Assembly: GCA_946965045.2 (NCBI GenBank)
Contig: OX337233.1
Location: forward strand, 2,604,001 to 2,668,000
Length of the DNA: 64,000 nt
DNA from: Epithemia pelagica
Taxonomy: Eukaryota > Protista > Bacillariophyta
Reading direction: 5' to 3'
Part shown: positions 998 through 17,452 of the stretch, in pieces
Layout of the letters: each line of letters starts with the position of its first letter
How positions within the stretch are numbered: the first letter of the stretch is position 1
Notes under the pieces: model-generated
What the model saw: only the letters and a program-made list of their open reading frames with translations
Told to the model about the DNA's origin: nothing
The model's database searches: none
Translations under genes and position numbers: made by a program

Positions 998-2285
998 TCA
1001 TCGGTTCTTACCAGCCAATTTCAGACCGCTTTCCGAAGCATTCATGTGAGCAGGTATTAGTTTTTCCAATACGTCTGGTGCAACTGATAACTCATGGCTC
1101 GTGAACTCAAAGAGCAATGGAGGAAGGTTTCCACCACCGTTAGGAAGTTTCGTAGATTCTTGTCTAAGCTCGTCAAAGAACGGGTGAGCACAGCCTTCCA
1201 AAGGAGCAATGCGTTTGGAAGGAGTATAAGCCAACGTTCTCGCAATAAAGTCCATCGCGTCTACAGGTGTTTTATTCCGGAAGATCTTCTTCCATTGACA
1301 CCCTTTGATCTGAGGAAATTTAAACTCCATATAATTGGAGTTCATGCTCCTTATCTCTTCCTTTGTTGGAGTCCCCAATACCTTGATAATTTCAACGAGT
1401 TGATCAACTCCCGAGTCTCCAGGGAACAACGGTTGCCCCAGCAACAGCTCTGCCCCCACACACCCCTGTGACCAAATGTCGATTGCGGTTGTGTAGTCTG
1501 TAGATCCAAATATGAGTTCCGGAGCACGATAGTATCTCGAGCATATGTAACTAACATTTGGTTCACCTGGAACAAGCGCTTTCGCACTGCCAAAATCACA
1601 AAGCTTAAGTTCCTGCGTTTGAGGATTCACCAACAGATTCTGCGGCTTAATATCTCGGTGGCATATACCCAAAGTGTGTATGTGTGCCAGAGCCCGGCTA
1701 AGTTGATACAAATACATCTTCACGAGAACTAGCGGTAAGTTCATCGCGTGCTTCTGATGTCGCCGGCTGATTGAATAAACCGTCTCTGGCACAAACTCAA
1801 GCACAAGGTTCAAATACAGATCGTCTGGCTTTTCTCCCTGAAAAGAACAAAAACAAACATCAAGTCGAGAATCAGCGTACCGTTTCCATTCAGGAAGGAT
1901 ATGACAGTAAACGAACATGAAAACTTACCTGAGAATAGAAGCAATGCTTCAAGGCAACGATATTTGGATGTGGATCTTTCACTAGCTGTCTCATAATCTG
2001 TAATTCTCTGTTCTTAAATCTCTTGTCCTGAAGGACTTTCTTGATGGCAACCACTTCTCCCGTTTCCACAACTTTCGCTTCGAAGACTACTCCGAATGAT
2101 CCATTTCCGATTATGCGTTCGGCTGCATATGAGATATTTTGTTCATTGTTGCTGCTGCTAACTGCAGATGATGATGTGCCACCCAAGCGAGAAGAGTCGC
2201 CACCAGCAGCGGAAGTCGGCGCGCTCGACTCTGCCATTACGCTGCTGATGTTATTCTGCTGCGGTAAAACCGATGCCATGTACAA
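998..2285 (-). CDS. GSK3: Glycogen synthase kinase-3/shaggy-like kinase; 2 exons (2285-1930, 1837-998)
   Basis: Motifs [64 protein letters not shown] 92-nt GTAAG...CAG intron (1929-1838) joins YSQ|GEKPD in frame. Confidence 0.97.
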
Positions 2286-3161
2286 GTATCCGGATTGTCC
2301 CGATGCTCTTTGTTGTATGAATTGATTCCGAACCTCACCGACGACGGCACAGCGACCAGAAGCGGTGACACCAACTAAGCGATCTGTGATTTGTCGCTCA
2401 CCCTACATACAATGCCTTACGTAGCTTTTCGTAGGATCCCTACGACACGGATCTTCCACTAAAAAATTCTCGAAAATGGTACGCCGACCCCACCCTTCCC
2501 AAAGCCAATGGTGGTACTGAAGTCAACGATGTTAGAGAAAGGGTCGATGATAATACCCTATTCGACTCTTTCCAACGATGAACTTAAAACAGCAGACTCA
2601 AATGGATCCAAAGTCGTCTGCCGTCGTCGTTTGATGCGAGAGCTGCGGCTCCGATCTTTGGCCGTGTCGGTGTCGGTCGCAGCACGCAGTCTTGATTTCT
2701 CGCACAGAACCCAAGACAAAATTCTACCATATTCTTCGGTTGATGATTGATGATATAGTTGATACAGGATACTGCCCTTTTGTGCTACAAAACACTACCT
2801 CTCGGAATACTTCGGAGTAGCTAATAAGATACGACTCTAGCTCGGATCTCAAGTCTCAAGCAGACGGCTGGATTCTGATGCCGTCCCAAGTTTTGGTGTA
2901 TACCATTCGGCTCATGGACGACTAGCTCCATTTCGGCTAGATCATCAATATCGAGAGCAAGAGTTACGCTCTCTCCCACTGTTTGGTCACAGCAAAGTTC
3001 AGAAGTCGTTGTCGTACGCTTGCCAATTTCGATGGAGTTTTGTTGATGCCAAACCGTCTGCGGACAACAACGACTTTCACTCCTCGCTGTGTTACAATAC
3101 CCAACTATACCAGGCAAACAACCAACCCTCAGCGCGAGTCGCTAACGGAGAAAAGCGAAGG

Positions 3162-4634
3162 ATGGAAGACGGTGACTCGCGTCCCCTTCTTGAGCAAATC
3201 CTATTGGAGCTGCATCACCTGCGCCTCTCAACACAGCGTGGGACAACTGATCCTTCACCAACCCCATCCACTCTTGGTTCGCAAGCAGTGGATGCGTTGG
3301 AACAGTTTAATGGGTTTCACGTGGTATCCTCAGATACTTTTCCGGGAGAACCGACAACGCCTTTCTTGAGCAACGAACGAATGTCGGAGCTTCAAACAGC
3401 ATCCTTTAAAAACGAATCCGAGCTTGTTCAATGGTTCGAGCCTTGTTTTCGAGAGATCATGGCAGAAGCAAGTGATGAAGTTGGATTCAAGATGATTCTG
3501 CTCAACACAGAAAGGCACCCTTGGGTCGAATGTCCACAGGGCGGTGCTTCCCCGAAGCCTGATGGTGTTGGACTTGCTGTTGAATTCGCAAGCTTCCACA
3601 TAACGAGCGGTGACGAGGCCTACCAGAACGTTGGTGACAGCAATTTCGGAAGCTTGGCGGCTTGGGTTCTACGAGACTCGATTGAATTTGTTACCAAATG
3701 GAAAGTTGGTTCAAGTTTTGCTCAAGGGCTTGGCGAGGGGATTGAGTACCACCGACGAATCAAGTCAAACTATAAGAAAGATCGTCATGTACAGGAATCG
3801 AAGAGGACCACGGATGTACTTGTTGCAAATGAAAGCGGTTTTAATCTTGTCAGATGCTACGATGGAGAAGCACGATCGCTGTACGCCTCTACCTGGAACT
3901 CCCCATGCTCCAAAGTGGCTCTTTTCAAGTTTGTCGTTGGGTCTTTATGGCCCAGACCGCGAAAAAGGATTTGGAAAACGGCAGTGGATCACCTATGCCA
4001 GTTGCTGAACGTAGAATTGGTGGAATCCGTGGCCGGACAAAACTGCTTCCTCGGCTATGGCTCGAGCGGTCGGGTTTTTTTGGTTCGGAGACAAGATGCC
4101 GACGCGGACGAGGGTTTTCTGGTCCTGAAAGTTGCCGCTGCAGAAAATCTTACTGAAGCAAAAAGTGAGATTCTCACCATGAAGTATTATCAAGACAGGC
4201 TTGCCCGGGCTGGAGTTACCTCACAACTGGTGTCGTCAGCAATTCGAATTTCAGAGGGTTACGCTGGTCTACTGCTGACGCCTTTCGGGAGGGTGTTACG
4301 GCCGTTGAAAACAGACGTGTCTAGTGGGCTTACTTCCTTGCGAGCGCTGCACTTGGCCGGGTTTGCTCATCGAGCTAGTAGGAGGCAGAACGCCATCATG
4401 ACAAGAGACGGTCAATGCAAATGGATAGATTTGCGTACACTTGATGACTTAGAGGGAGAAGGCGATGAGGCGAAAAATGATATCTTCTCGAGAGACGTAT
4501 GCACCATGGTTGAGTCTTTCGGTGTAGTCACGAACTTTGAGGTGCTCCGTCCTCACGCAGCTGCCTACTTACGAGGTGGTGAAGACCATCTTCACGCTCT
4601 ACTTGAGGAGATAGCAGGGATATGGCGAACATAA
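3162..4634 (+). CDS. Crinkler/CR-type REase-fold plus kinase-like protein with degenerate catalytic motifs
   Basis: Intronless ORF (open from 3009; first ATG at 3162). PKPDG...WVLRDSIEFVTKWK resembles a PD-(D/E)xK fold. The C-terminal kinase-like part has LGYGSSGRVF, VLKV, AHRASRRQN and WIDL. Confidence 0.6.
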   Translation: MEDGDSRPLLEQILLELHHLRLSTQRGTTDPSPTPSTLGSQAVDALEQFNGFHVVSSDTFPGEPTTPFLSNERMSELQTASFKNESELVQWFEPCFREIMAEASDEVGFKMILLNTERHPWVECPQGGASPKPDGVGLAVEFASFHITSGDEAYQNVGDSNFGSLAAWVLRDSIEFVTKWKVGSSFAQGLGEGIEYHRRIKSNYKKDRHVQESKRTTDVLVANESGFNLVRCYDGEARSLYASTWNSPCSKVALFKFVVGSLWPRPRKRIWKTAVDHLCQLLNVELVESVAGQNCFLGYGSSGRVFLVRRQDADADEGFLVLKVAAAENLTEAKSEILTMKYYQDRLARAGVTSQLVSSAIRISEGYAGLLLTPFGRVLRPLKTDVSSGLTSLRALHLAGFAHRASRRQNAIMTRDGQCKWIDLRTLDDLEGEGDEAKNDIFSRDVCTMVESFGVVTNFEVLRPHAAAYLRGGEDHLHALLEEIAGIWRT

Positions 4635-5463: not shown

Positions 5464-8400
5464 CTAGACTTTTGGATGCAAGGTTGCGGAAGAAGGCGAT
5501 CTTAGCATGGAACTGCTGCCGGATTGCGACAACGCCACTGATCGCGGACTCGCCTTGCTTCTCATCATTTGGAGTAATTCGGCCAAGAGAGCACTCGCGG
5601 TGGAATCTGCTCCGGCACTGGGACCCTGGATCGTCAGCGGGTATGCCATGTGGCGCTGTGTAAAGAATCGAACACACTCACAGCTTGGAGGATTGACCGC
5701 AAAAACATGATGATCTGGGACTTCTACCAACTTGATCTCTACTCGTTGCTCTTTGACGTTGATACTTGCCACATGACGAAGGACACATCCTCGTTTTCGC
5801 GCCGCGTCCACCCGCTTCTTCACGTGCTCGTCCACTTCGGGTGAAAGATTGTTGTAGTCAACCTCGGAATGGAGAATTGACTCCACTACTTTTTCGCTAC
5901 TGTCTTGAATTTCCCCTAGCTCAAGGTTTTTCATACCCAGTTCGCCTGCGAGGATCATGAGGACTCGGCACGTGTATTCGTTGTTGAGATCCTTGGTCGG
6001 ATCCTCTTCCATGAGACCCAATTCAATGGCCTCCTTCACCGCTTCACTAAACCGACATGGCTTTCCAATGCTGGGAACAAAGTCGCCTTGAAAGGCTCCT
6101 TTGCTGGTTTGCTCGTCGTAGGAATGGCAGACCGAAATGTCGGATGGCGGGGAGATACGAAACATGATGAAGGACAAAGACACAGACAAAATACCATCAA
6201 TGTGCCGAATGCGGTCCCCCGATTGGAGCAGCGTCCTCATTGTTCCAATGATGGGCAAGGCACCACCGACAGTGACTTCTCGTAGATACTGGGCCGATTG
6301 TTTGCCGTTGGCCTTGGTCGCGGCAGCAATCTCTGACCGTTGTTCTCTTGATCCGGACAGACCCGTGTTATTGGCTGTAACAACATTGATACCTGCACGA
6401 AGCCAATCTGCGTGGCAACGACCAGCATCTTCGTCATTGGTACAATCGAAAATGACGTGATTGGCGTAATCACTGCGGAACAAATGCTTGGGTATGAGAT
6501 CCAATCCTTGGGATCTGATCAATTGGGCGGACTCCTTGTCCTCGAATGAGGTTTTCTTGTTCATGGCAATCTCGGTCGACTCTGGTTGCGTGCTCATCAT
6601 TGCTAGTGTGTAATCGTTGCTACTAATGGTTTCGGAACCACCATCCAAATCTCGTTTGAGCACCACGGCATCGCCAAGTGGATCAGTCTTCGGCAAAATG
6701 ACGCAGACTTGGAGTTCCAAATCAAAGGTCGAACGGAGCGATTCTCGTTGCTCGTCGAGAAGACGAAGAAGAGAATGTCCCAAATCGTTCATGCCAATGA
6801 TTCCCACACGAATGGTAGTATGAGAAAGACGAAAGGCCGCATGGACGGCACGCAAGGCACGAGTGGAATCTTGCGAAAGCACCACGGCAGAAATGTTGCG
6901 CTCCGAAGATCCCTGCGCCACGGCAAGGACGTTGATCTTGGCATCGCCCATGGCCGAAAAGAAGCGGGCCGAAACACCAGTGGTATGGGCCATACCATCT
7001 CCAACTGCAGCAATAATAGCGCATGGGGCAATCACATCGACACTGGAAATGTGATTGGCCTTTAATTCTCTATGAAACTCGTCTTCAATCGTTTCCTGAG
7101 CCAGTTCTGCCATGGAGGCAATGGTGGCAAAGGTAATGGTATGCTCCGAAGAAGCTTGCGAGATGAGAGTCACATTAATGTTGTTCTCCTCCAATCGTCC
7201 AAACAAACGTTTCGCTACACCAGGAACACCCATCAAACCAGATCCTTCCACATTAATGAGAGCCATGTTTTCCGCACTGGAAAATCCACAAACAACCTTG
7301 TCCAGATCCGAATGACGAGTGGAAGACACAAAGATGCGTGTACCTGGGAAGGATGGCTCAAAGGTATTTCGGATGTAAATGGGGATTTGATTAGGCCGAG
7401 CCGAAATGGCTGGTTGCATCGTTTTGGGATGAATCACCTTGGCTCCAAAATAGGCCATTTCCATGGCTTCATTGTACGATACTTCTGGTACTACTTGTGA
7501 ATGTGGAACGCGACGTGGATCGGCGGTCAATACACCATTGACATCGGTCCAAATGGTAATGGAATTTGCCTGCAACAATCTGCCCAAAATGGAGGCTGAG
7601 TAGTCTGATCCATCTCGTTGCAAGGTGGTTGCAACACCCTCTGTATTACTCGCCACATATCCTGTCACGACAAAATGCAAAACAGTGTTTGATTTTTGCT
7701 TGTCATCAATCTTGGCCCACTCTTCTTCGTACACCTGCTCCAGCTTGGCTTGAGACATGTCCCATTCAATGGCCCCACTTTGTACGGCTTCCTCGTCAAC
7801 GACAATTAAACGTCGCGCATCAATGTAGGCAAACTCATGATGAGTCTGCGAGGGATGCGTGGGAGGGGAAGCGCGATCGTGTCTGGAAGAAAGGGAGGTG
7901 TCCAAAACATTGCTGCCAATGTCATCTTCCGGTGTGGAGGCCGACAAGGCATCGGACGAAGAGAAGGATGACGAGGATCGAGCTTGTCGACGTAGCTTTA
8001 AGTACGCCGTGAGTATTTGAGCCGACCAAAGCTCACCATATCCGGATACCAACTCGGAGATTCGTGAGGCTTTCCATTTCATTAAGGAGACGGTCCGCAA
8101 AATATCGGCAATGTTTTGGACGTCTTTGCGAATGACGCCCAGCAATCGATCGTGTACTTCCTTGTTTTGAGCAAACAAATCATCCAATACTGACTTTTGC
8201 TTATTGATAATATCTTGAAGAGTCGATTCGACGTCTTTTCGTTCGGCCGCAAAAGTCACACTTTGCAGCAACAAATCGGTCGTCTTGGGTTTACCACCAA
8301 TCGCCGACACGACCACTGCAATCGAACGGGGAGACGGTTCTAGGCCATTCTTTCGGTGTAGGGTGGTGGTAGGTCCTACGACTTGACCATGCAGTTCAAT

Positions 8401-8556
8401 AATGTCGGCGACGCGTCCAAAGCAGTCGGCATTGGCTACCGATGTGCCACCAAATTTGTGAACCAGCCAACACTTGTCTTGAAATCCACGATGCATCTCT
8501 TCTTCTACTTGTTTGTCAGTTTGAAGGATGACATTGTTCTTGGTTTCCTTTGTCAT
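5464..8556 (-). CDS. Aspartokinase-ACT-ACT-homoserine dehydrogenase fusion (HSDH domain looks degenerate)
   Basis: 1030-aa ORF with KFGGTSV, SGYGELWSA, TTLQRDGSDYSA and WTDVNGVLTADPR, two ACT domains, and a C-terminal HSDH fold (VTVGGALPII). No N-terminal signal peptide seen. Confidence 0.93.
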   Translation of the reverse strand: MTKETKNNVILQTDKQVEEEMHRGFQDKCWLVHKFGGTSVANADCFGRVADIIELHGQVVGPTTTLHRKNGLEPSPRSIAVVVSAIGGKPKTTDLLLQSVTFAAERKDVESTLQDIINKQKSVLDDLFAQNKEVHDRLLGVIRKDVQNIADILRTVSLMKWKASRISELVSGYGELWSAQILTAYLKLRRQARSSSSFSSSDALSASTPEDDIGSNVLDTSLSSRHDRASPPTHPSQTHHEFAYIDARRLIVVDEEAVQSGAIEWDMSQAKLEQVYEEEWAKIDDKQKSNTVLHFVVTGYVASNTEGVATTLQRDGSDYSASILGRLLQANSITIWTDVNGVLTADPRRVPHSQVVPEVSYNEAMEMAYFGAKVIHPKTMQPAISARPNQIPIYIRNTFEPSFPGTRIFVSSTRHSDLDKVVCGFSSAENMALINVEGSGLMGVPGVAKRLFGRLEENNINVTLISQASSEHTITFATIASMAELAQETIEDEFHRELKANHISSVDVIAPCAIIAAVGDGMAHTTGVSARFFSAMGDAKINVLAVAQGSSERNISAVVLSQDSTRALRAVHAAFRLSHTTIRVGIIGMNDLGHSLLRLLDEQRESLRSTFDLELQVCVILPKTDPLGDAVVLKRDLDGGSETISSNDYTLAMMSTQPESTEIAMNKKTSFEDKESAQLIRSQGLDLIPKHLFRSDYANHVIFDCTNDEDAGRCHADWLRAGINVVTANNTGLSGSREQRSEIAAATKANGKQSAQYLREVTVGGALPIIGTMRTLLQSGDRIRHIDGILSVSLSFIMFRISPPSDISVCHSYDEQTSKGAFQGDFVPSIGKPCRFSEAVKEAIELGLMEEDPTKDLNNEYTCRVLMILAGELGMKNLELGEIQDSSEKVVESILHSEVDYNNLSPEVDEHVKKRVDAARKRGCVLRHVASINVKEQRVEIKLVEVPDHHVFAVNPPSCECVRFFTQRHMAYPLTIQGPSAGADSTASALLAELLQMMRSKASPRSVALSQSGSSSMLRSPSSATLHPKV

Positions 8557-9074
8557 GGTAAGGTGCTATAGATCCTGTTCGACGTTGTTTCACCTTGACA
8601 GAATTTTCTGTGTGGTGGCGATGGATGGATGAACGATGCGTGACAAAGACACGAATCGATGCAGAACAGATGGGAGAAGAAATTCCCGAAAAGTGAAAGA
8701 GGAGGAACGCGTGTTGGTTGTTGGTTGTTGGCTGTTGGTGTTGACTGTTGACGTTCGGACACCGCGTCTGGGCAGCAGTTCTGATTCGCTGATTGGCGGC
8801 TGAAGTGTGGCGGGCCGCACTCCTGGGGGAGCCGGACTGACGTGTGGGGGAATTCCGTTCGGCCAGGTGCTCTTTCATCCTGTTCTTCCGAATGGTGACC
8901 ACCAATTGTCAAGGATATTCGACTGCTAGGTATTTTTCTTGAGCTACCTCAATCCTCAGGGGAACATTACAGCTAGCTGCTCCTCTAGTAGTAGCTACCG
9001 AAGGCAAAATCGTTGGAGAGGACCGACCGTATCAATTTATTCGTATGAGAGGATGTATGATGAGTGTAACCTTA

Positions 9075-9522
9075 GGCTGTTCCTCGAGCACGACAAAACC
9101 AATCTGAAAACGTGACACGTCATCAATTTACATCATCTTGACGTCATATTTCACTGCACAGTTTTTGTCGGCCCTCCATTCCGACAAATCCAAAGCTCAG
9201 GATTTGTCGGCCGACAAATCCTGAAATAGCATTAGGGATTGTGTTATCTTTATTCTAGTGTACATATGGGATACAGAAACTTCCAGCGCGCGTTCTGGAC
9301 TTCAGCGGCGCGCGACGGTCCCCCAATCCCTAATGAAGTATTCCAACTTTCGAATAGTATTGGTATTCAATTCCACAGAGTACTTTTGGGGAGTGTTGGG
9401 GACCTAGGCGCGGGCTCTTGTTTTGGTTTTGGTTTTGCTCGAGGATGGAAAAACTGGCCAATGTGAAAATTCTCCAAGATGTCACGTTCTCAAATTGGTT
9501 TTGTCGTGCTCGAGGAACGGCC
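9075..9522. mobile_element. Non-autonomous PIF/Harbinger-type MITE (448 bp)
   Basis: TIRs of about 43 bp: GGCTGTTCCTCGAGCACGACAAAACCAATCTGAAAACGTGACA versus the reverse complement of the right end, GGCCGTTCCTCGAGCACGACAAAACCAATTTGAGAACGTGACA (3 mismatches). Flanked by TTA at 9072-9074 and 9523-9525. No coding capacity. Confidence 0.88.
9197..9224. repeat. Perfect 28-bp palindrome inside MITE 1
   Basis: TCAGGATTTGTCGG|CCGACAAATCCTGA. A second TTTGTCGG...CCGACAAA hairpin lies just upstream (about 9163-9188). Confidence 0.9.
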
Positions 9523-9525
9523 TTA

Positions 9526-10023
9526 GAGCATGCGCAGCCGTTGGAACAAAATTAGAACAAATGTGCGTGACTCACGCAGTCTTATTCCCATAATGGACGT
9601 CTTGCGTCGTTATTCGTACGTTTGATCAAATCTGTGCAGCCGTAAAAAACAAAAATGGAGCAAAAATGGAAAAAAAAATAGAAGTTTTGGCGCGCCCGCG
9701 ACATTGGCTTGCGTGTAGCGGTTTGAAGTCACGCCCGTCATCCTGTCACGTTGCTGACGCGCGTGCATTGGTATAATAATAATGTAGATTCAGATTGTAC
9801 ATATGGACAGCATGTCTCGTGACTCATGTTCCAAGACTCGTATGCTCCAACTTTCTGCTAGAGAAAACAGGGCACAGATTCGTGGTATCTGTGCCAAAAA
9901 AAGGAAGAATAACTCAGATTTAAATTTGTTCCAGGTTTGTTCCCCGCGCTGCAGAGCCATTTTCATGGAATAGCACAGATTTGCCGATTTGTTCCTATTC
10001 TATTCCAACGGCTGCGCATGCTC
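9526..10023. mobile_element. Second non-autonomous PIF/Harbinger-type MITE (498 bp), different family
   Basis: TIRs GAGCATGCGCAGCCGTTGGAA (21 bp perfect, extending imperfectly to about 38 bp). TTA at 9523-9525 and 10024-10026. Confidence 0.88.
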
Positions 10024-10106
10024 TTATCTGATGGAGTGTTGGCAAGGCTCGATCTTCCATGCACGCGGCCTGTCAGCATGGGATAAGGTACAAGTCGCGG
10101 TGGCCT

Positions 10107-10123
10107 AAAAGCAAAATGCAAAA
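10107..10123 (-). terminator. Putative Pol III terminator (three T4 runs)
   Basis: Minus strand TTTTGCATTTTGCTTTT, starting 10 nt after G37 of the 5' half. Confidence 0.55.
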
Positions 10124-10133
10124 GAAGCGATCT

Positions 10134-10211
10134 CTGCAATCGAACGCTCTACCACTGAGCTACTAGTGCCGGACGAGCACCAGACGTGAGTCGAACACGT
10201 GACCATTCGAA
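10134..10211 (-). tRNA. Circularly permuted tRNA-Cys(GCA): 3' half (nt 38-73; 10211-10176), spacer CGTCCG (10175-10170), 5' half (nt 1-37; 10169-10134)
   Basis: The minus strand reads T TCGAA TGGTC ACGTG TTCGACT CACGT CTGGTGC T cgtccg GCACTAG TA GCTC AGTGGTA GAGC G TTCGA TT GCA G. Swapping the halves gives a 72-nt cloverleaf with all four stems paired, a GCA anticodon and U73. Confidence 0.9.
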
Positions 10212-10250
10212 GTTTGTTTTAATTCACTATCTTAGACCGATGATTTTAGA

Positions 10251-10257
10251 ATATATA
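10251..10257 (-). promoter_or_regulatory. Putative TATA element for Pol III transcription of the permuted tRNA
   Basis: TATATAT on the minus strand, about 40 nt upstream of the tRNA 3' half. Confidence 0.45.
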
Positions 10258-10317
10258 CACTAACATTGGTTTTTCTATTGGGGGATTGAGATTTGAGAAC
10301 AAACGCAACATGTCGTC

Positions 10318-11988
10318 ATGGCATCAAGGCAAGGGAGCAGTAAGAAGAAGACACCACGAAAGAAAGAAGCACGTGATAGGAATTCAACGTACAGTTGCCA
10401 CAGACTAAAAGGGGGAGTCGTACTGTGGTGGATTCTCACTGCATGCGTGTGCTATGCCGTTGTATGGATCGTTACCTTTGCATTCCACGTGCACATTGTT
10501 GTGGACCATGGGCAACTCATTATTCAATTGATTCAGAACGACACCAGCATCGCCGCTGGATCGGAAGACTCGTATTTGACGCACTTTGGCACTCCAGTGG
10601 ATGTTGCGAAACGGAGTTTTATGCGGCGCCAACAACATGAGCAGCTTGCCAACAAACATCCAACCAGGCGACACCCACAATCAGCTCATATCAATTTTCT
10701 AGACAAAGAATTTCATCCCTTGGGTGACAAGAGAGATCATATTATACATTCGAGAGATGGCGGGCTGTATCGAATTGGGAGAGGTGGAATGCTTCAAAAA
10801 TTGTCCTCCAAGAAAACCACTACCCAAAACAGCACGATTCGTGACTCTTATGCACCCACGGGTGGTGCATTACCAGTACTGGAACGAGGTGTCTTTTCGG
10901 GAGATTCCTATCAACGTTTGGGGGAATGGCCAGAAGTGGATCAATTTCAATGTCTTAGAAAAAACACGTCAGATCCACAATCAGACCCTTATTTCGAATG
11001 GCAGAAACGAGCCCCGTACGTGATTATTCTCGGTGCCATGAAGGGGGGAACTCAGGCCTTGACGACACATTTGTGGCAACACGAACGATTTGTAAAGCAA
11101 GATGTCTCCACGGAGCTGCATTTCTTTGGTCATTTGGATTACCAACAATCCTCACGGGGCATTCCCATTGGTTCAAATCAAAAAGCCTACGCCTACCGAT
11201 TTCAAAAAAGTCACAGTGGCTTGTTTGACCCCCACACGCATCCGCCCCGCACCAGTGCCAAGCCGCACGTATTGGCGATTGACAGCACACCCTATTATCT
11301 GCTGATGAGCGACGTTGTGCCCCAAGCCATTTGTTGCGTGGCACCCTGGGCCAAGTTGGTGGCACTCCTACGAGACCCTGTGGACCGTATCTTATCCCAT
11401 TATCGGTATTTGCACGAATCTCGATGGCGTAGCGGCAAGGCCATGGTCGACTGGGATGCCTGGATTCATGCGGATTTGCAGTTGCTACGCGAAACCGGTG
11501 TTTGGCAAGATTGGACCAAGGTGGATTTTGACACCTTTTCTGGAAGTGTACAAGAGTTTCAAGCCTGGAAACGTTATGTCCATCATGAGCAGAATGTACA
11601 GTACGTTGTCGGAAGAGGCATGTATGCGATTCAGTTGGAGCATTACTACAAAGTGTGGGCCGCCTGTCCTCGCATGCAACAATATTCTCCCGATTCACCC
11701 CCGCTCAAGGCGGTGAAATCCGAAGAGTTTGCACGGAATACAAACCGTGTGTACAATGAGATTTTGAAGTTTTTGCAGCTGGATCCCGTGAATTTGACGG
11801 ATACGAAAGCCAAACACGAGACCATGAAACTGAGCAGCGAAATACCAATGCCGGCCCACATTCGACAAGAGTTGCAAGCCTTTTATCGACCTTACAATCA
11901 ACGACTGTACAAATTACTGAATTGGACGGCGTCGATGCAATGGCCCCTAACACCACAAGACGATTTCAAAAGCCAGGAGAAGCTGTGA
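10318..11988 (+). CDS. Type II membrane sulfotransferase (heparan-sulfate 3-O/N-sulfotransferase-like)
   Basis: N-terminal TM segment, 5'-PSB motif IILGAMKGGTQAL, 3'-PB motif LLRDPVDRILSHY, C-terminal FYRPYNQRLYKLL. Confidence 0.88.
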   Translation: MASRQGSSKKKTPRKKEARDRNSTYSCHRLKGGVVLWWILTACVCYAVVWIVTFAFHVHIVVDHGQLIIQLIQNDTSIAAGSEDSYLTHFGTPVDVAKRSFMRRQQHEQLANKHPTRRHPQSAHINFLDKEFHPLGDKRDHIIHSRDGGLYRIGRGGMLQKLSSKKTTTQNSTIRDSYAPTGGALPVLERGVFSGDSYQRLGEWPEVDQFQCLRKNTSDPQSDPYFEWQKRAPYVIILGAMKGGTQALTTHLWQHERFVKQDVSTELHFFGHLDYQQSSRGIPIGSNQKAYAYRFQKSHSGLFDPHTHPPRTSAKPHVLAIDSTPYYLLMSDVVPQAICCVAPWAKLVALLRDPVDRILSHYRYLHESRWRSGKAMVDWDAWIHADLQLLRETGVWQDWTKVDFDTFSGSVQEFQAWKRYVHHEQNVQYVVGRGMYAIQLEHYYKVWAACPRMQQYSPDSPPLKAVKSEEFARNTNRVYNEILKFLQLDPVNLTDTKAKHETMKLSSEIPMPAHIRQELQAFYRPYNQRLYKLLNWTASMQWPLTPQDDFKSQEKL

Positions 11989-12661
11989 TTTGTCGTTAAA
12001 GATCATATCTGTTGTGAACCTTATCACATTTTGCCATATCATTTTTACACTGTTCTGACTTTTTGTGTGAGAATGGGGCTTCCCCATGAGGATATCGAAC
12101 TCGTAGCGAGTTGGCCGGCAAACTCGCGTTGGCCCATGAGAATGTATGCTTGTGTTTAGCTTGTTGCGCCTGTCCCTTCCTAGTTCAAGCGCCTTACTCT
12201 TGAAGTTGTTTGCAGTGTTATGACCCAACCCAACGCATTGTCGCAGGGCAGGGTCACTTGAGACACTGAGATTTTTCTCAGTGCCACCTTTTAGAATAAT
12301 AAAATTGGTGGGGCATATCAATATCAAATCCAACAGACAGTTGGAGTCTTCCCAAAACGTTAGAATGGTTTGAGGGCGCACGCCCCAAACCCCAAACACC
12401 CAAAAAAGGAGATGCATCCAATCTTTGTTTCGATGGTTGACTCCGAAGGTCATCCTTTATAAGTTTGTGCTGAACTCTATCTATTCCACAGGGGAAACGA
12501 TCAAGCTCTTCTTGTGTTGTGACTTGTGACAAGGCAAATAATAGCAGCTCCACTTTCCACACATTACTGTGACGTGCAATCCATCCCTCTCTGTCAAACA
12601 GCAACCCCATTTCACCTTTGTGTCATTCGAGTTCGCCTCTAGAACTTGAGGTTATTTCACA

Positions 12662-14842
12662 ATGTTAAAGCGTGTCGGGTCGAGAAGGAAAGTGAACTCA
12701 CCGGGTATTGGGGAAGCATCACCCACAAGCTCCAAAGAAAATGTCAAGGTTGGAGCGGGCGACAAGTTACCCGATGCCGGTTTGAATGACACCATTGCAT
12801 CCAACGATCATGAACGACTCATCAAGGCCGCAGTAGCACGATCCAAATCCTCTTCCCGATTGTTTGGACGCGGTCGACGAGGATTTACCGAAGAAAAATT
12901 GGCTCCCAAACAGGGTGGCAGCAGTAGTGGTACCGGAAGCGCGCCCTCACGAGGTGTACGTCGCCATCATTCGACCGACGCCGCGAAAGCACTCGCCGGT
13001 GAGTCCAGTGCCAGTGGTTCGGCACCGTTTGAATACAGAGAAGTCGTAGTCAATGGAAAGAAAAAGAAGGTTCGTGTCAAAAAGAAGAGTGCTGCGGAAG
13101 CGGCGGCCGATGGCGATGGACACCGCAAACTGGTCAAAGTCAAGGTGAAGCAGGTCATGAAAAAACATACACAACAACAAAATGAGCTTCAGAATTCGGT
13201 TCCCATCAAGGTGGGGATTCCGGCCAATCATCAATTGCGCAAACCATCCACGGCGCAGTCCTCCAAGTACATGCAGGCTTCGGACAATGTCTCAGGTGTA
13301 TGGTCCAAGGCCGCTCGGTCCATTTTCTCCTTTGGCAATGATAAACGAAGTAAAGCGTCATCCGGAGGTGATCCGGAGGAAATGGATTTGGTCTTTGAGC
13401 CTGAAGCAGGAGGAGAACGACAAAAGGAAGAGAATGAAGAAGAACCGGTCCATGCGCAAGGACACGACGACACGGGCAAGCCATCGATGGATGCTGCACC
13501 AGAAACACCCGAAGGAGTCAAGCCAACCCTTTCCAAGGGCTACAAACCTCCAACTCAGTTGAATGGAGAGCCTGGATTACTGCAGGCCAAGAAGAAAGAA
13601 GCTCCTCCAACAGAGACTGGGAACGAAGCAAACAACAACAAAAATGAGACCAAATCGGTCAAGAAAGACGCTCCCGTTTCACCAAGACAACCAGAGTTCT
13701 TTGCACGCTACGTTGCTGGTCCAGGTGCTGGTGGGGACTATGATTTGCAAGACGGCCCACCCATGGAAATTCATACCAATGCCATGACAAAGACCAAATC
13801 GAAATCGGTTTTTCAATCGGAATCCATGATCCGCCGCCAGTTTATCCAAGACCAGTGGCTTTCGGGTGGGTCCAACTATCAGGTATGGGAAAAGGCGGCT
13901 GCCAACAACCTGATTGACATGTCGGTTGTCACGTCCGTCACTGAGTGTACGACGGATGTTTCCACCAAAGACCCTACGAGCGACGGTGAAGATGCCATGG
14001 ACGACGACGTATCCGAGATCACACACGAAGACCTTGTCCCCGATATGCTCATGGAAGTCAAGCAGACCAACGAATTGGAACTCTGGGAAGCCTTGTGTGC
14101 CCATCGAATAAATCTCTTTGGCCCTCGCAGTGCCTTGACGGCGGAATCGTTTGTGAATCGCGGCATTGCTCAGTTACAGGCCGGACGTCTGGAAGAGGCA
14201 GCCGATTCCTTGTTGAGTGCAGTCTGTTTCCTCGAAGAAGTTCATGGCACCATTGATCACACCGATCGCAATGGCAATGGTGGAGCACCACCCCATATGC
14301 ACATGGCACAAGCCTTTTACTTCCTCGGCAAGGTTTACATGTTGCAGGAACAGTATCCCATGGCAGAATCGGCCTTTTACAAGGCGCTCAACATTCGCCA
14401 ACAACATTTGGGCAAGGTCCATCCGGATGCGGTGGAATGTTGGGAACAAATAGGCTTGTCGTATGTTCAACGAGCCGATCAGGCCCAGGGAGAGGAACGA
14501 CAGATCTTGGAACGACGGGCCATGGATATCTTATCACAGGTGTTGAAGTTGAAACGTGCCATTTTCGGATCGATTGATGTCTCGGTTGCGCGAACGGCTC
14601 GTGCCGTGGCCAAATTATGCGCCATTCGCAACGAATCGGAACGGGCCCAGCGATTGTACAAACAAGTCCTGAATGTGCTGGCTCAAATGGATAAGGATCT
14701 TACTTCCATGATCAATCCAGACTTTCCTGATCCACGTGATGTGGCCAAACATAAGGAACGGAAACGAGAACTCACCAGCATTGAAGAGGAAATGAGACGG
14801 TACGGCGTCAAGGAGGTCAAGGAGGAAATTCTGGAGATCTAA
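12662..14842 (+). CDS. Protein with a low-complexity N-terminus and C-terminal TPR repeats (kinesin-light-chain-like)
   Basis: 726-aa ORF with helical repeats such as AFYFLGKVYMLQEQYPMAESAFYKALNIRQQHLGKVHPD. Confidence 0.8.
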   Translation: MLKRVGSRRKVNSPGIGEASPTSSKENVKVGAGDKLPDAGLNDTIASNDHERLIKAAVARSKSSSRLFGRGRRGFTEEKLAPKQGGSSSGTGSAPSRGVRRHHSTDAAKALAGESSASGSAPFEYREVVVNGKKKKVRVKKKSAAEAAADGDGHRKLVKVKVKQVMKKHTQQQNELQNSVPIKVGIPANHQLRKPSTAQSSKYMQASDNVSGVWSKAARSIFSFGNDKRSKASSGGDPEEMDLVFEPEAGGERQKEENEEEPVHAQGHDDTGKPSMDAAPETPEGVKPTLSKGYKPPTQLNGEPGLLQAKKKEAPPTETGNEANNNKNETKSVKKDAPVSPRQPEFFARYVAGPGAGGDYDLQDGPPMEIHTNAMTKTKSKSVFQSESMIRRQFIQDQWLSGGSNYQVWEKAAANNLIDMSVVTSVTECTTDVSTKDPTSDGEDAMDDDVSEITHEDLVPDMLMEVKQTNELELWEALCAHRINLFGPRSALTAESFVNRGIAQLQAGRLEEAADSLLSAVCFLEEVHGTIDHTDRNGNGGAPPHMHMAQAFYFLGKVYMLQEQYPMAESAFYKALNIRQQHLGKVHPDAVECWEQIGLSYVQRADQAQGEERQILERRAMDILSQVLKLKRAIFGSIDVSVARTARAVAKLCAIRNESERAQRLYKQVLNVLAQMDKDLTSMINPDFPDPRDVAKHKERKRELTSIEEEMRRYGVKEVKEEILEI

Positions 14843-15178
14843 ATGAAGCCAAAATCGATATTCGATCTTCCTTTTCATGCAGGGTTCACCCGACCACATA
14901 CCTGGAGCGATATGAATGAAACGCTCAAAGCAGAAATTCTCGCAAATTGCTTTGTTCCTACAGCCCAAACCGGACGCACACGTTGTTTAAGGCCTACCTT
15001 ACAGTATTGCAACAGTTCCCATTTTAAAAACCCCTCTATGATAACACTGTGGTTGCTACTACATATATCTCGCCAGATGCAAACTTCATTTTTGCGTCTG
15101 TTACATGAAATGTAGGTCCAGAGCAAATCTCCCCCCATACAAAAATTCTGCTGTCGTTGTTTTCCATAAAAGAGCCCT

Positions 15179-17452
15179 CTACTCTTCGGCGCTGATGGCG
15201 TACAAGAAATCTCGCGGTTTCAAGGATGACGACACGACGGAATGCATGGGGCATTCTTCTATTAATCGGGCCAGGGTTCTTTCAATCAGCGACAATGGAT
15301 GGTTCTCCATTGGATTCGGTGGTGGTTTGGAATGTCCTTCAGTCGAAACACGTGGTGGTGACCTTGAGTGGATGCTGCTTGTTTCAGTGGCCCATCGATC
15401 GTTGGAAGAAGTATTTGCCGTTGATGTTCTTGTGGAAGTACCTGCAACGATGGCTGTATCCTGAATTGCTCGTGGCTGAGATGGTGGAGGGACCGGAGAC
15501 GCTTGTCGCGATTCCAACAGTAAGGGCAGCGTCACCATGAGGCGTGGATTCGCATCGATGGACACAACTTTTTGTCGTTTCATCACGGTCGGTGACGTCT
15601 TTTCCGCTTCCTTGTAGGCTACTTCAATTTCCTTGTCATTGGCATCTTCCAAAGCGATTGGCTGAGCCGCATTCTCCTTGTCGTCCGTCGGTGATTGTGG
15701 TTCCGACCTTGAAGTTCCAGGAGCGTTGGCCAAAGTTGCTGGTTGTGTCTCAAACGGGTTGGTCACATTGGAAGTCGTCGATTCCTGAGTGTAGGGATCC
15801 AACGCAGCAGATTCCGACACCAATGCTTGTGTATCGAGTGGAGCAGCTGGAGAATTCACCTCCTCTGACTCTGTTGGCTTTGTAGTGCTGGGATCTTCCA
15901 TTAACGAATATTTTCTTTTCCTGCCAGGAGCCGCAACGTCCATAAAGCCAAAGTCACTGTCATCGTCTTCTTCGTTGTCGTCAACTTGCTGTCCTGGGCG
16001 TTGTTCACGTTGAGCTTTTGTAGTATTTACGGAGAGTTCCTTTTCTGGATTGGGTTCACCAGAGTCTTTTGGACTGCTCGTCATTGCATCGCGAGGGAGA
16101 ACCTCGGGAGGTTGAGATACCAACATGGACTCAATGCCCATGTCGTCATCGTCTTCTTCCTCCTTCTCTCCTCCACTCTCTGGTTGCTCCGTCTCCAACA
16201 TTGAAATTCGATCCACGACATGGTGGTTGTTGTTGTTACTGGAAGCCTCGGGTTGGACTGTCTCAAGAGTTGGACCCTTTGACAATGCCTGGTTGTGAAC
16301 CTTGGTGTTGTTCGGTTTCTTATAGGGGTTAGGGATTCGTCGAGTGGTATGATCCCGTACAGTAGCATCCAAATTCGATGCGGGTGGTCGTTGGATCGTT
16401 GCACAAGTCGCTGCAGCGTTTGTTTGTAGTCGAGCGCCTTTCGGATTGGTTGTATCTCGGTCCACACCTGGGTGGTGGGTGGATCGTAAGCGTGTTGTCT
16501 CCTTGGATGGAGGAGGTTCGGATGGCGCATGCAGGGCTGGGGCTAACTTGCGTTTGGCCGAGACGACGTGGTTCGAGATTGCCTGCAACAGACTGGGACT
16601 CTGGAATACCTTGGAAATGTCTCCCATGTGCACCGTGGAGGACGACGACCGAGAACCCGTGGGTTTGTTGTTGGTGGTTGTTGTCGTTCGAGGCGAGCGT
16701 TCTTCGCGGGTGTCCGCCGCAACTACGAGGGGAGGGGAGCCCGGTGGATCGGGAGATGCCAGAGTCCTCCTCCTCCTTTTCTGCGGGTTGGGACTTGGTA
16801 GTGAACCCTGCAAGTGCCATCGTACTTGGTTCCAATCATGCTGAAACTCGAGCATGCATTGTTTGACCCGTGTACAGAGTTCGACCGACAAGGGATTCTT
16901 GACAGTCCCAAAGCCGTGTCCACCCCATACCGTGACCTTGTGGATATACAAACACAAGGAATCCTTCTTCTTGCCGTTGTGGTTGAGGTGGTTGTTTGGG
17001 AGGCCCCGGCGGATGGATCGAGGGGCTGCCTCGTCGGTTGGAGGCAATCCTCCTTGTTGTTGTTCTTGTTGCCATGCTTGTTGCTGGGTCATGACGAGCC
17101 ATTTTTGGAGACACACCAAACAGCCGGAGGATGCATGTTGTCGTTCCAACTCCAACTGTGCCGACGAGGATAAGACGCCACGAATGAAATGTGTGCCATC
17201 CGAGAGACGCAACCACCAACGGCCAGTAGTAGTAGTCGTCGAAGTGTCGCTATCTGCATTGCTGGAACCCTTTACTTTTTCCATTTCAATGATTTGTGCC
17301 ACGACGGCTTCTTCCTGGAGTGGCATCCGAGTGGTTGTCAGCGTGTTCCCACTTGTTGTTGTTGTTGCATCACGTCGTGATTGCAAGGACTGGACGACGG
17401 CTGCTTCAATCCATGGCTCTTGTGCCGTCGAACCCGACAAAAAACTACTCAT
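15179..17452 (-). CDS. N-terminal OB-fold protein, TPP1/Est3-like, with a long disordered C-terminus
   Basis: 757-aa ORF. EPWIE...AQIIEM...LRLSDGTHFIRGVLS...GCLVCLQ...LYIHKV matches the order of TPP1 OB elements. The remainder is S/T/P/E-rich. Confidence 0.6.
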   Translation of the reverse strand: MSSFLSGSTAQEPWIEAAVVQSLQSRRDATTTTSGNTLTTTRMPLQEEAVVAQIIEMEKVKGSSNADSDTSTTTTTGRWWLRLSDGTHFIRGVLSSSAQLELERQHASSGCLVCLQKWLVMTQQQAWQQEQQQGGLPPTDEAAPRSIRRGLPNNHLNHNGKKKDSLCLYIHKVTVWGGHGFGTVKNPLSVELCTRVKQCMLEFQHDWNQVRWHLQGSLPSPNPQKRRRRTLASPDPPGSPPLVVAADTREERSPRTTTTTNNKPTGSRSSSSTVHMGDISKVFQSPSLLQAISNHVVSAKRKLAPALHAPSEPPPSKETTRLRSTHHPGVDRDTTNPKGARLQTNAAATCATIQRPPASNLDATVRDHTTRRIPNPYKKPNNTKVHNQALSKGPTLETVQPEASSNNNNHHVVDRISMLETEQPESGGEKEEEDDDDMGIESMLVSQPPEVLPRDAMTSSPKDSGEPNPEKELSVNTTKAQREQRPGQQVDDNEEDDDSDFGFMDVAAPGRKRKYSLMEDPSTTKPTESEEVNSPAAPLDTQALVSESAALDPYTQESTTSNVTNPFETQPATLANAPGTSRSEPQSPTDDKENAAQPIALEDANDKEIEVAYKEAEKTSPTVMKRQKVVSIDANPRLMVTLPLLLESRQASPVPPPSQPRAIQDTAIVAGTSTRTSTANTSSNDRWATETSSIHSRSPPRVSTEGHSKPPPNPMENHPLSLIERTLARLIEECPMHSVVSSSLKPRDFLYAISAEE

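Follow-up and report, generated by a model that had tools for sequence, protein, structure and literature searches.

Can a tRNA gene whose 3′ half precedes its 5′ half supply a diatom with cytosolic tRNA? This question is raised by a locus in a 64,000-nt stretch of the Epithemia pelagica genome (contig OX337233.1, positions 2,604,001 to 2,668,000; called the window below), where the two halves of a tRNA-Cys(GCA) stand in inverted order on the minus strand at positions 10134-10211. The analysis described here makes it very probable that this locus is a functional circularly permuted gene of type II, that is with the 37/38 junction, for a nuclear-encoded cytosolic tRNA-Cys(GCA). Inspection of the sequence showed that on the minus strand the 3′ half (10211-10176) is followed by the 6-nt spacer CGTCCG (10175-10170) and then by the 5′ half (10169-10134). 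The 3′ half, which is predicted to be transcribed first and extends from U38 to U73, contains U38, TCGAA (39-43), the variable loop TGGTC, the T arm ACGTG/TTCGACT/CACGT, the acceptor strand CTGGTGC (66-72) and the discriminator U73. The 5′ half, which is predicted to be transcribed second and extends from G1 to G37, begins with GCACTAG (1-7), U8, A9, the D arm GCTC/AGTGGTA/GAGC and G26, and ends with TTCGA (27-31) followed by U32, U33, G34, C35, A36 and G37. The spacer, which forms the loop closing the acceptor stem, contains neither an encoded CCA nor a T-run. The rejoined halves were recognized by ARAGORN as a 72-nt tRNA-Cys(GCA) with a 7-bp acceptor stem including one G-U pair, a 5-bp anticodon stem, and intact D and T arms, and they contain the conserved tRNA nucleotides U8, A14, G18G19, U33 and G53-T54-T55-C56. 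They also carry U73 and the GCA anticodon, which are the established identity elements for CysRS. An earlier note, made from the letters of the window, had described the two halves, the spacer and the arms, as well as the mutual complementarity of the halves (7 acceptor pairs with one G-U, 5/5 anticodon pairs), and each element that it listed was present at its place.

The same note had supposed that standard tRNA scans would miss such a gene. Indeed, ARAGORN called no ordinary tRNA across the 64-kb window, and the Rfam search of the locus and window gave no match at gathering score. The window was also analyzed with an isotype-blind permutation scan, in which at each third position the downstream 90 nt were placed before the upstream 90 nt, ARAGORN was run with introns allowed, and only those tRNAs whose intron spanned the artificial joint were kept. 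The scan returned exactly one locus, which was the tRNA-Cys at 10134-10211 on the minus strand, and eight dinucleotide-preserving shuffles of the window (512 kb, both strands) gave zero matches.

The genes near the tRNA locus were used to follow it into other genomes. The open reading frame (ORF) that adjoins it (10318-11988, plus strand) encodes a sulfotransferase-domain protein, while the ORF at 5464-8556 on the minus strand encodes a bifunctional aspartokinase-homoserine dehydrogenase. The closest relatives of both proteins are all from diatoms, and the best named matches are from Epithemia clementina, with 56% identity for the sulfotransferase and 78% for the aspartokinase-homoserine dehydrogenase, which agrees with the earlier assignment of the locus to a diatom nuclear genome. 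The DNA of the relatives around both neighboring genes was then fetched and subjected to the permutation scan. A permuted tRNA-Cys(GCA) was located beside the sulfotransferase gene in E. clementina (L001:9821-9898), in two diatom assemblies from ENA (L002:9622-9699 and L003:9816-9893), in Fistulifera solaris (L120, 5′ half from 9802), in the assembly GCA_025491035.1 (L119), and in a diatom contig from an Antarctic lake (L116/L117:7732-7821). In Phaeodactylum tricornutum CCAP 1055/1 (L121:22279-22363, equal to CM000617.1:738822-738906) and in Fragilaria crotonensis (L123, 5′ half from 21796) such a unit was located at most 10 kb from the aspartokinase-homoserine dehydrogenase gene. The permutation scan gave no other permuted tRNA and no canonical tRNA in these loci. 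Hence, the search for swapped halves in other diatoms, which the note had advised, found the permuted unit at the syntenic site and beyond it, with compensatory changes between the halves.

The comparison of the window with its relatives showed that the tRNA positions are far better conserved than their surroundings. Against L003, whose sulfotransferase is 99% identical to that of the window, there were 0/72 differences in the mature tRNA positions and 40/216 in the spacer and flanks (Fisher p = 5.6e-6). Against the more distant L001 and L002, 70-71 of the 72 tRNA positions were identical, while the neighboring protein was 51-56% identical and the flanks could not be aligned. The 3′ half shows 100% identity in both L003 and L002, whose flanks differ. 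The spacers of the window, L001, L002 and L003 differ in sequence (the four are CGTCCG, CTCTCG, CTGTTG and TTCCTC), and across the permuted family the spacer length is 5-28 nt. The GCA anticodon, U73 and U33 are invariant across the permuted units.

To see how the two halves changed relative to each other, 25 distinct permuted units were aligned and scored against the permuted cloverleaf. In this alignment 99.4% of the 525 stem cells pair, and changes on both sides were observed in 12 of the 21 pairs, with covariation in all seven acceptor pairs and in pair 27-43. In a permuted gene the acceptor pairs hold the upstream and the downstream half together. The covariation score of the alignment was 0.503, in comparison to 0.12 for shuffled alignments, none of 500 of which reached it, and to 0.03-0.09 when the partners were slid by 1-3 columns. 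Since the search pattern had fixed the D stem and most of the anticodon stem, these parts are uninformative. The sequence comparisons argue that the permuted arrangement is old and under selection in diatoms.

The regions outside the tRNA halves contain signals that are consistent with transcription and splicing of the permuted unit. In the window, the leader upstream of U38 ends in AAAACAAAC on the minus strand, and the trailer after G37 is AGATCGCTTC, followed by TTTT. A TATA-like AT-rich box, TATATATT, is located 46 nt upstream of U38 (10250-10257) and is a candidate RNA polymerase III promoter element. The trailer and predicted RNA polymerase III terminator region (10107-10133) starts with A at trailer position +1 and contains T4 runs at 10123-10120, 10116-10113 and 10110-10107, the first of which is 11 nt after G37, while the unit interior, composed of the 3′ half, the spacer and the 5′ half, is free of T4 runs. 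The upstream AT box and the downstream T4 runs had both been pointed out in the earlier note. The signals were counted in 54 non-redundant permuted units. A run of four or more T residues begins 3-14 nt after G37 in 53/54 units and never occurs inside the unit, trailer position +1 is A in 36/54 units, and an all-AT TATA-like 8-mer begins 31-60 nt upstream of U38 in 34/54. In the P. tricornutum unit the sequence TATATAA occupies positions -42..-36. Ordinary tRNA genes of P. tricornutum have an AT-rich region at -30..-40 (PMC3531208), and thus the AT-rich boxes of permuted and ordinary genes are placed alike, with respect to the first transcribed half and to +1, respectively.

The most specific of these signals is found in the leader. 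Its positions -6..-3 are complementary to U32-C35 at all four bases in 36 of the 54 units and at three bases in a further 15, so that at least three of four pairs are formed in the exact register in 51/54 units. At other leader offsets four pairs were found in 2% and three pairs in 15.5%, and shifting the register by one or two bases abolished the signal. The most common leader words at -6..-3 are GCAA, GCAG and GCGA. Judging from this complementarity, the pairing of leader -6..-3 with U32-C35 represents the four-bp central helix of a bulge-helix-bulge (BHB) motif, and leader positions -2 and -1 together with U38 are predicted to make the 3-nt bulge at the 3′ cut site. In the window, the last six leader bases are ACAAAC (10212-10217), placed by the minimum free energy (MFE) fold and by the family-wide leader pairing, and of the ACAA at -6..-3 the CAA (-5..-3) pairs with G34, U33 and U32, with A opposite C35, which gives three of the four pairs. 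The leader pairing with U32-U33-G34 and the 3-nt bulge proposed in the earlier note are therefore the weak end of a family-wide, register-specific helix of BHB type. The MFE fold of the window precursor contains the T hairpin, the spacer-closed acceptor hairpin, the anticodon stem as an enclosing helix, the CAA/UUG pairing with the 3-nt bulge, and a 5-bp leader-trailer helix, in which leader AGUGA (10224-10228) is predicted by the fold to pair with trailer UCGCU (10130-10126), possibly forming the outer helix of the BHB-like motif. The MFE z-score of this precursor was -0.14, and thermodynamic stability is not informative here. An outer leader-trailer helix is strong in L116 and L006 and partly formed in P. 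tricornutum.

The order of genes, the Cys identity, the conservation, the covariation, the register-specific leader pairing and the terminator position are observed in the DNA. The subsequent steps, which are transcription, the cuts, the circle, spacer removal, CCA addition and the mature tRNA, are modeled here on the red alga Cyanidioschyzon merolae, in which permuted genes pass through a circular RNA intermediate during expression and which, according to a 2014 review, is the sole system for which the pathway has experimental proof (PMC3978253). By this analogy, RNA polymerase III would start downstream of the AT-rich box and produce a transcript composed of the leader, the 3′ half, the 6-nt spacer, the 5′ half and a short trailer, stopping at a T4 run. 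The transcript would fold as a cloverleaf in which the acceptor stem is closed by the spacer and the anticodon loop is open, and the last leader bases would pair with U32-G34 (C35), so placing the junction of the leader and U38 in a 3-nt bulge. The tRNA splicing endonuclease would then cut before U38 and after G37, tRNA ligase would join G37 to U38 into a circular intermediate, and the circle would be opened by RNase P and tRNase Z, which are expected to remove the spacer, with CCA added afterwards. In P. tricornutum, tRNA genes for eight amino acids contain introns (PMC3531208), and therefore its splicing endonuclease and ligase are likely to be present and in use.

A permuted gene could also be functional without a circular intermediate, if the spacer were removed first and the halves were then trimmed and ligated in a trans-like fashion, or if the tRNA remained nicked. 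The order of processing is not fixed by the sequence, RNase P and tRNase Z could plausibly act on the acceptor hairpin and its 6-nt loop alone, and in Skeletonema-like contigs the unit starts only 6-12 nt after a tRNA-Ala, whose processing by tRNase Z would define the leader. On the other hand, the register-specific leader pairing of BHB type indicates that the splicing endonuclease acts on an intact precursor, and circular intermediates were found in C. merolae, the sole experimentally studied system (PMC3978253). Processing without a circle therefore appears improbable, and maturation through the circular intermediate is preferred.

It was also considered that ordinary tRNA-Cys genes could have been duplicated in tandem and that the locus could be a non-functional remnant, in which the 3′ half of one copy and the 5′ half of the next one survived, an outcome that the earlier note had named as contrary to its own proposal. 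Decayed second units are indeed present in L001 (9690-9767) and L002 (second copy at ~9420-9507), where these copies are presumably redundant, and in F. crotonensis there is, ~95 nt downstream of the permuted gene, an additional orphan 5′ half whose anticodon loop is mutated (L123:21891). Such copies fit the model, described in the review, in which permuted genes originate by tandem duplication (PMC3978253). This explanation is contradicted by the conservation and covariation described above, because the unit remained intact at the syntenic site while the neighboring proteins diverged to 43-56% identity, its halves acquired compensatory changes and retained full pairing in 25 sequences, and all differences from L003 fell outside the mature tRNA (0/72 versus 40/216). 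The leader helix and the terminator are conserved as well, only 5-28 nt free of T-runs separate the halves, and the genuinely redundant copies decayed, unlike the main unit. Hence, it is very improbable that the locus is a relic rather than a functional permuted gene. The orphan 5′ half of F. crotonensis and the decayed units of L001 and L002 resemble intermediates of the tandem-duplication model. In one metagenomic contig (L015:395-1520) three intact permuted tRNA-Cys units are arranged in tandem, each with its own AT-rich box, leader of AGCGAAA type and T-run. It is thus the whole permuted unit that is duplicated.

A relaxed local Rfam scan gave one notable near-match, to the bacterial Y RNA-like family YrlA (RF02553) at 10121-10230 on the minus strand, covering the full model with 41.4 bits and E = 9e-08, which could suggest a tRNA-like structural RNA that does not serve in translation. 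In the 5′-to-3′ direction both YrlA and the diatom unit have first the T arm, then a closed acceptor-like stem, and last the D arm, and the near-match arises because this tRNA-like module has the order of a permuted tRNA. From the alignment, we read the match as an independent recognition of the permuted topology and not as a family assignment. The score is far under the gathering score of 69, the columns of the outer Ro-binding stem are mismatched, diatoms conserve neither the leader nor the trailer, and the GCA anticodon, U73 and U33 are invariant. The sub-threshold score and the flank comparisons led us to reject the Y RNA-like identity, which has hardly any probability left; unlike YrlA, the diatom unit is eukaryotic and nuclear, lacks a conserved Ro-binding stem, and has retained a translating tRNA's anticodon and discriminator. 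Work on the tRNA mimicry of YrlA deposited in bioRxiv (10.1101/312249) reportedly also mentions permuted tRNAs.

The order of the halves was also compared with read-derived Logan contigs from four runs of one study, three of them DNA-like and one (X4) RNA-like. The contigs from the DNA runs, which come from the same organism and are possibly the source of the assembly itself, matched 10001-10212 and 10183-10322 without differences. The same order was found in at least eight other diatom assemblies or contigs, and since the read-derived contigs agree with it as well, the locus is not an assembly artefact; the independent assemblies are the stronger of these two arguments. A misassembly or a collapsed array is thus next to impossible, even though in one run the unitigs break at the element edges (X2 records 13-15) and the depth over the element is somewhat above that of the flanks, because a single X1 unitig spans 10001-10212 and another one 10183-10322, and the order recurs in those diatoms and in 60 metagenome matches (46 unique). 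The misassembly against which the earlier note had advised a check with reads was therefore not borne out. Beyond the tRNA terminator by ~90 nt, the region 9923-10045 has a Logan word depth of 1200-3300, compared to ~60-150 in the flanks, and many Logan contigs branch off at 9986-10030, which indicates a high-copy repeat adjoining the tRNA gene, possibly a transposon fragment.

Several observations weigh against the interpretation of the locus as a functional permuted gene, or against its extension to diatoms in general. The BHB-type helix of the window is relaxed, with three of four pairs and A opposite C35, and the leader-trailer outer helix was rejected as a family-wide feature, with a mean duplex-energy z of ~0. 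In L002 the anticodon stem contains a C27-A43 mismatch. The B box lies upstream of the A box in the permuted unit, and the function of a promoter in that order is putative. The surplus of Logan depth at 10128-10209 may point to a further allele or copy. The absence of canonical tRNA-Cys was established for the 64-kb window, which is the whole scanned part of this genome. Four named diatoms, Nitzschia inconspicua, Seminavis robusta, Mayamaea pseudoterrestris and Cylindrotheca closterium, gave no unit at a distance of up to 10 kb from the aspartokinase-homoserine dehydrogenase gene, a result that applies to the ~23 kb examined in each of them and says nothing on the remaining genome. Finally, in X4, the only RNA-like run, the neighboring mRNA was covered, while the tRNA locus had neither coverage nor a joint, as would be expected from a poly(A) library, if X4 is one; this result is uninformative rather than negative.

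The linkage of the permuted gene to its neighbors (5464-17452 in the window) is retained to a different extent in different genomes. Its linkage to the sulfotransferase gene and to a gene for a TPR protein is kept in L001-L003 and L116-L120, while L003, L012 and L116-L121 keep the one to the aspartokinase-homoserine dehydrogenase gene. Between the Epithemia-like group on one side and Fistulifera with L116 on the other, the tRNA has opposite orientations with respect to the sulfotransferase gene.

To follow the arrangement further, metagenomes were scanned using the D-arm and anticodon-arm sequence as the query, which returned 112 loci. Over the collected loci there were 127 pattern matches, among them the 60 permuted units already mentioned and 50 canonical tRNA-Cys, with the rest being other forms. 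One permuted contig (L074) encodes a protein that clusters with Skeletonema potamos at 90% identity, while the aspartokinase-homoserine dehydrogenase of another (L012) is closest to Chaetoceros neogracile (63-65%) and that of a third (L107) to Pseudo-nitzschia (75%). According to these placements, the arrangement spans pennate and centric diatoms. The GC-richer permuted groups (L005-type, L006/L073, L105/L115 and L008/L046) could come from Mamiellophyceae or other algae. The permutation scan of the ~0.9 Mb of collected loci gave no other permuted isotypes; the non-Cys permuted calls were rejected, as they represented either neighboring canonical tRNAs or these Cys units with their intron boundaries misplaced. 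In contigs from unknown eukaryotes (L103, L018/L058 and L068), tRNA-Cys in canonical order appears to have a long insertion (~66-85 nt) in the T arm or T loop, with matching T-stem and acceptor 3′ strands downstream of the insertion, and these insertions are candidate T-loop introns.

In Skeletonema-like and related contigs the permuted unit follows a same-strand tRNA-Ala(UGC) at a distance of 6-12 nt (L074:3198-3358, L013:341-497, L024, L079, L097 and L086:677-839), an arrangement that does not occur in the available text of the 2014 review (PMC3978253). In L039 (1-241) the order is tRNA-Ala, tRNA-Leu(CAA) and permuted tRNA-Cys. The whole gap between tRNA-Ala and tRNA-Cys in L024 and L079 is GCAATC, which is exactly the helix strand and the two bulge bases, and this suggests polycistronic transcription, in which 3′ processing of the upstream tRNA would create the leader. 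In other, unassigned contigs (L011:3158-3310, L010:808-961 and L023:1337-1491) the tRNA-Ala(UGC) is followed by a tRNA-Cys in canonical order, which is nearly identical to the permuted one in L086 (677-839), with the same T arm and one differing acceptor pair. These contigs may show how the same locus looks without permutation in a related lineage.

The diatom unit shares the geometry of the anticodon stem, the 3-nt bulge and the short 32-35 helix with ordinary tRNA genes that have introns at 37/38. In such genes the anticodon-intron pairing is recognized by the tRNA splicing endonuclease. The two differ in that the intron of ordinary genes joins two exons of a linear RNA, while the "intron" of the diatom unit is open, with the leader and the trailer as its ends, and therefore ligation would circularize the RNA.

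Among the known permuted genes, those for tRNA-Cys(GCA) in Mamiellophyceae closely resemble the diatom unit. In the 2014 review, 34 permuted tRNA genes are counted in C. merolae, four Mamiellophyceae, the Bigelowiella nucleomorph and the archaeon Thermofilum pendens (PMC3978253), which agrees with the hosts listed in the earlier note, and a 2025 preprint adds a permuted tRNA in Auxenochlorella. In its table, permuted tRNA-Cys(GCA) genes with the 37/38 junction are given for Ostreococcus lucimarinus, O. tauri and Micromonas pusilla, with intervening sequences of 26, 38 and 12 nt, respectively (Maruyama et al. 2010, cited in PMC3978253), and therefore both the isoacceptor and the junction type were already known. 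The genes of Mamiellophyceae have the same layout of 3′ half, intervening sequence and 5′ half as those of diatoms, with no further intron, and O. lucimarinus is reported to have an orphan extra 5′ half downstream, as does F. crotonensis. They differ in that Mamiellophyceae are green algae with intervening sequences of 12-38 nt, while diatoms are stramenopiles with 6 nt in the window and 5-28 nt in the family. The genes of C. merolae (Soma et al. 2007) follow the same logic of a single transcript with the 3′ half before the 5′ half and a BHB-type motif at the termini, as described in the review (PMC3978253), but there are eleven of them, none for Cys, and they have four junction types. The permuted genes of T. 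pendens have a similarly short intervening sequence of 1-7 nt (Chan, Cozen and Lowe 2011, PMC3218864), but there they are archaeal genes for iMet and Tyr with a 59/60 junction in the T loop and a strict archaeal BHB. No report of a permuted tRNA from diatoms or stramenopiles was found in the permuted-tRNA literature searched, including the 2014 review (PMC3978253) and a 2026 review (PMC13578239), which is in accord with the earlier note, whose author knew of no such report, and the PlantRNA papers (including PMC3531208) list none for these groups.

These results bear on a published anomaly of P. tricornutum, for which one paper lists a loss of tRNA-Cys and the absence of both Cys anticodons (PMC7678280), and in which a second paper found no detectable tRNA-Cys gene and described the Cys tDNAs as "not confidently annotated". 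The permuted unit at CM000617.1:738822-738906 probably explains this reported loss, which gives the anomaly a concrete answer in a gene that is invisible to tRNAscan-SE and ARAGORN. Permuted genes usually occur where the genome has no canonical gene for their isoacceptor. More generally, the permuted form is probably the main or only type of nuclear tRNA-Cys gene in diatoms, and the tRNA annotations of diatoms are systematically incomplete. In Mamiellophyceae the genes for tRNA-Leu(UAA) and tRNA-Arg(UCU) are also permuted. The anticodons UAU (Ile), UAA (Leu) and UCU (Arg) are absent from the tRNAscan-based tables of P. tricornutum (PMC7678280), and diatoms may hold more permuted tRNA genes, including those for these three "missing" anticodons. 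It would be a much bolder proposal, which we regard as unlikely, that the permuted gene is the only nuclear tRNA-Cys gene in all diatoms, was fixed in their common ancestor, and shares its origin with the mamiellophycean tRNA-Cys(GCA) through endosymbiotic or horizontal transfer. If this shared origin were true, it would provide a rare-genomic-change marker on the disputed green-algal contribution to diatom nuclei.

With this finding the range of circularly permuted tRNA genes, so far known from red and green algae and one archaeon, comes to include diatoms, which are a major stramenopile lineage. The arrangement is seen in the raphid pennates Phaeodactylum, Fistulifera and Epithemia and in the araphid pennate Fragilaria, as well as in contigs assigned to Skeletonema, to a Chaetoceros-like centric diatom and to a Pseudo-nitzschia-like pennate one. 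Because P. tricornutum is genetically tractable, the circular intermediate, the initiation by RNA polymerase III with the B box before the A box, and the essentiality of the gene become testable in a model organism.

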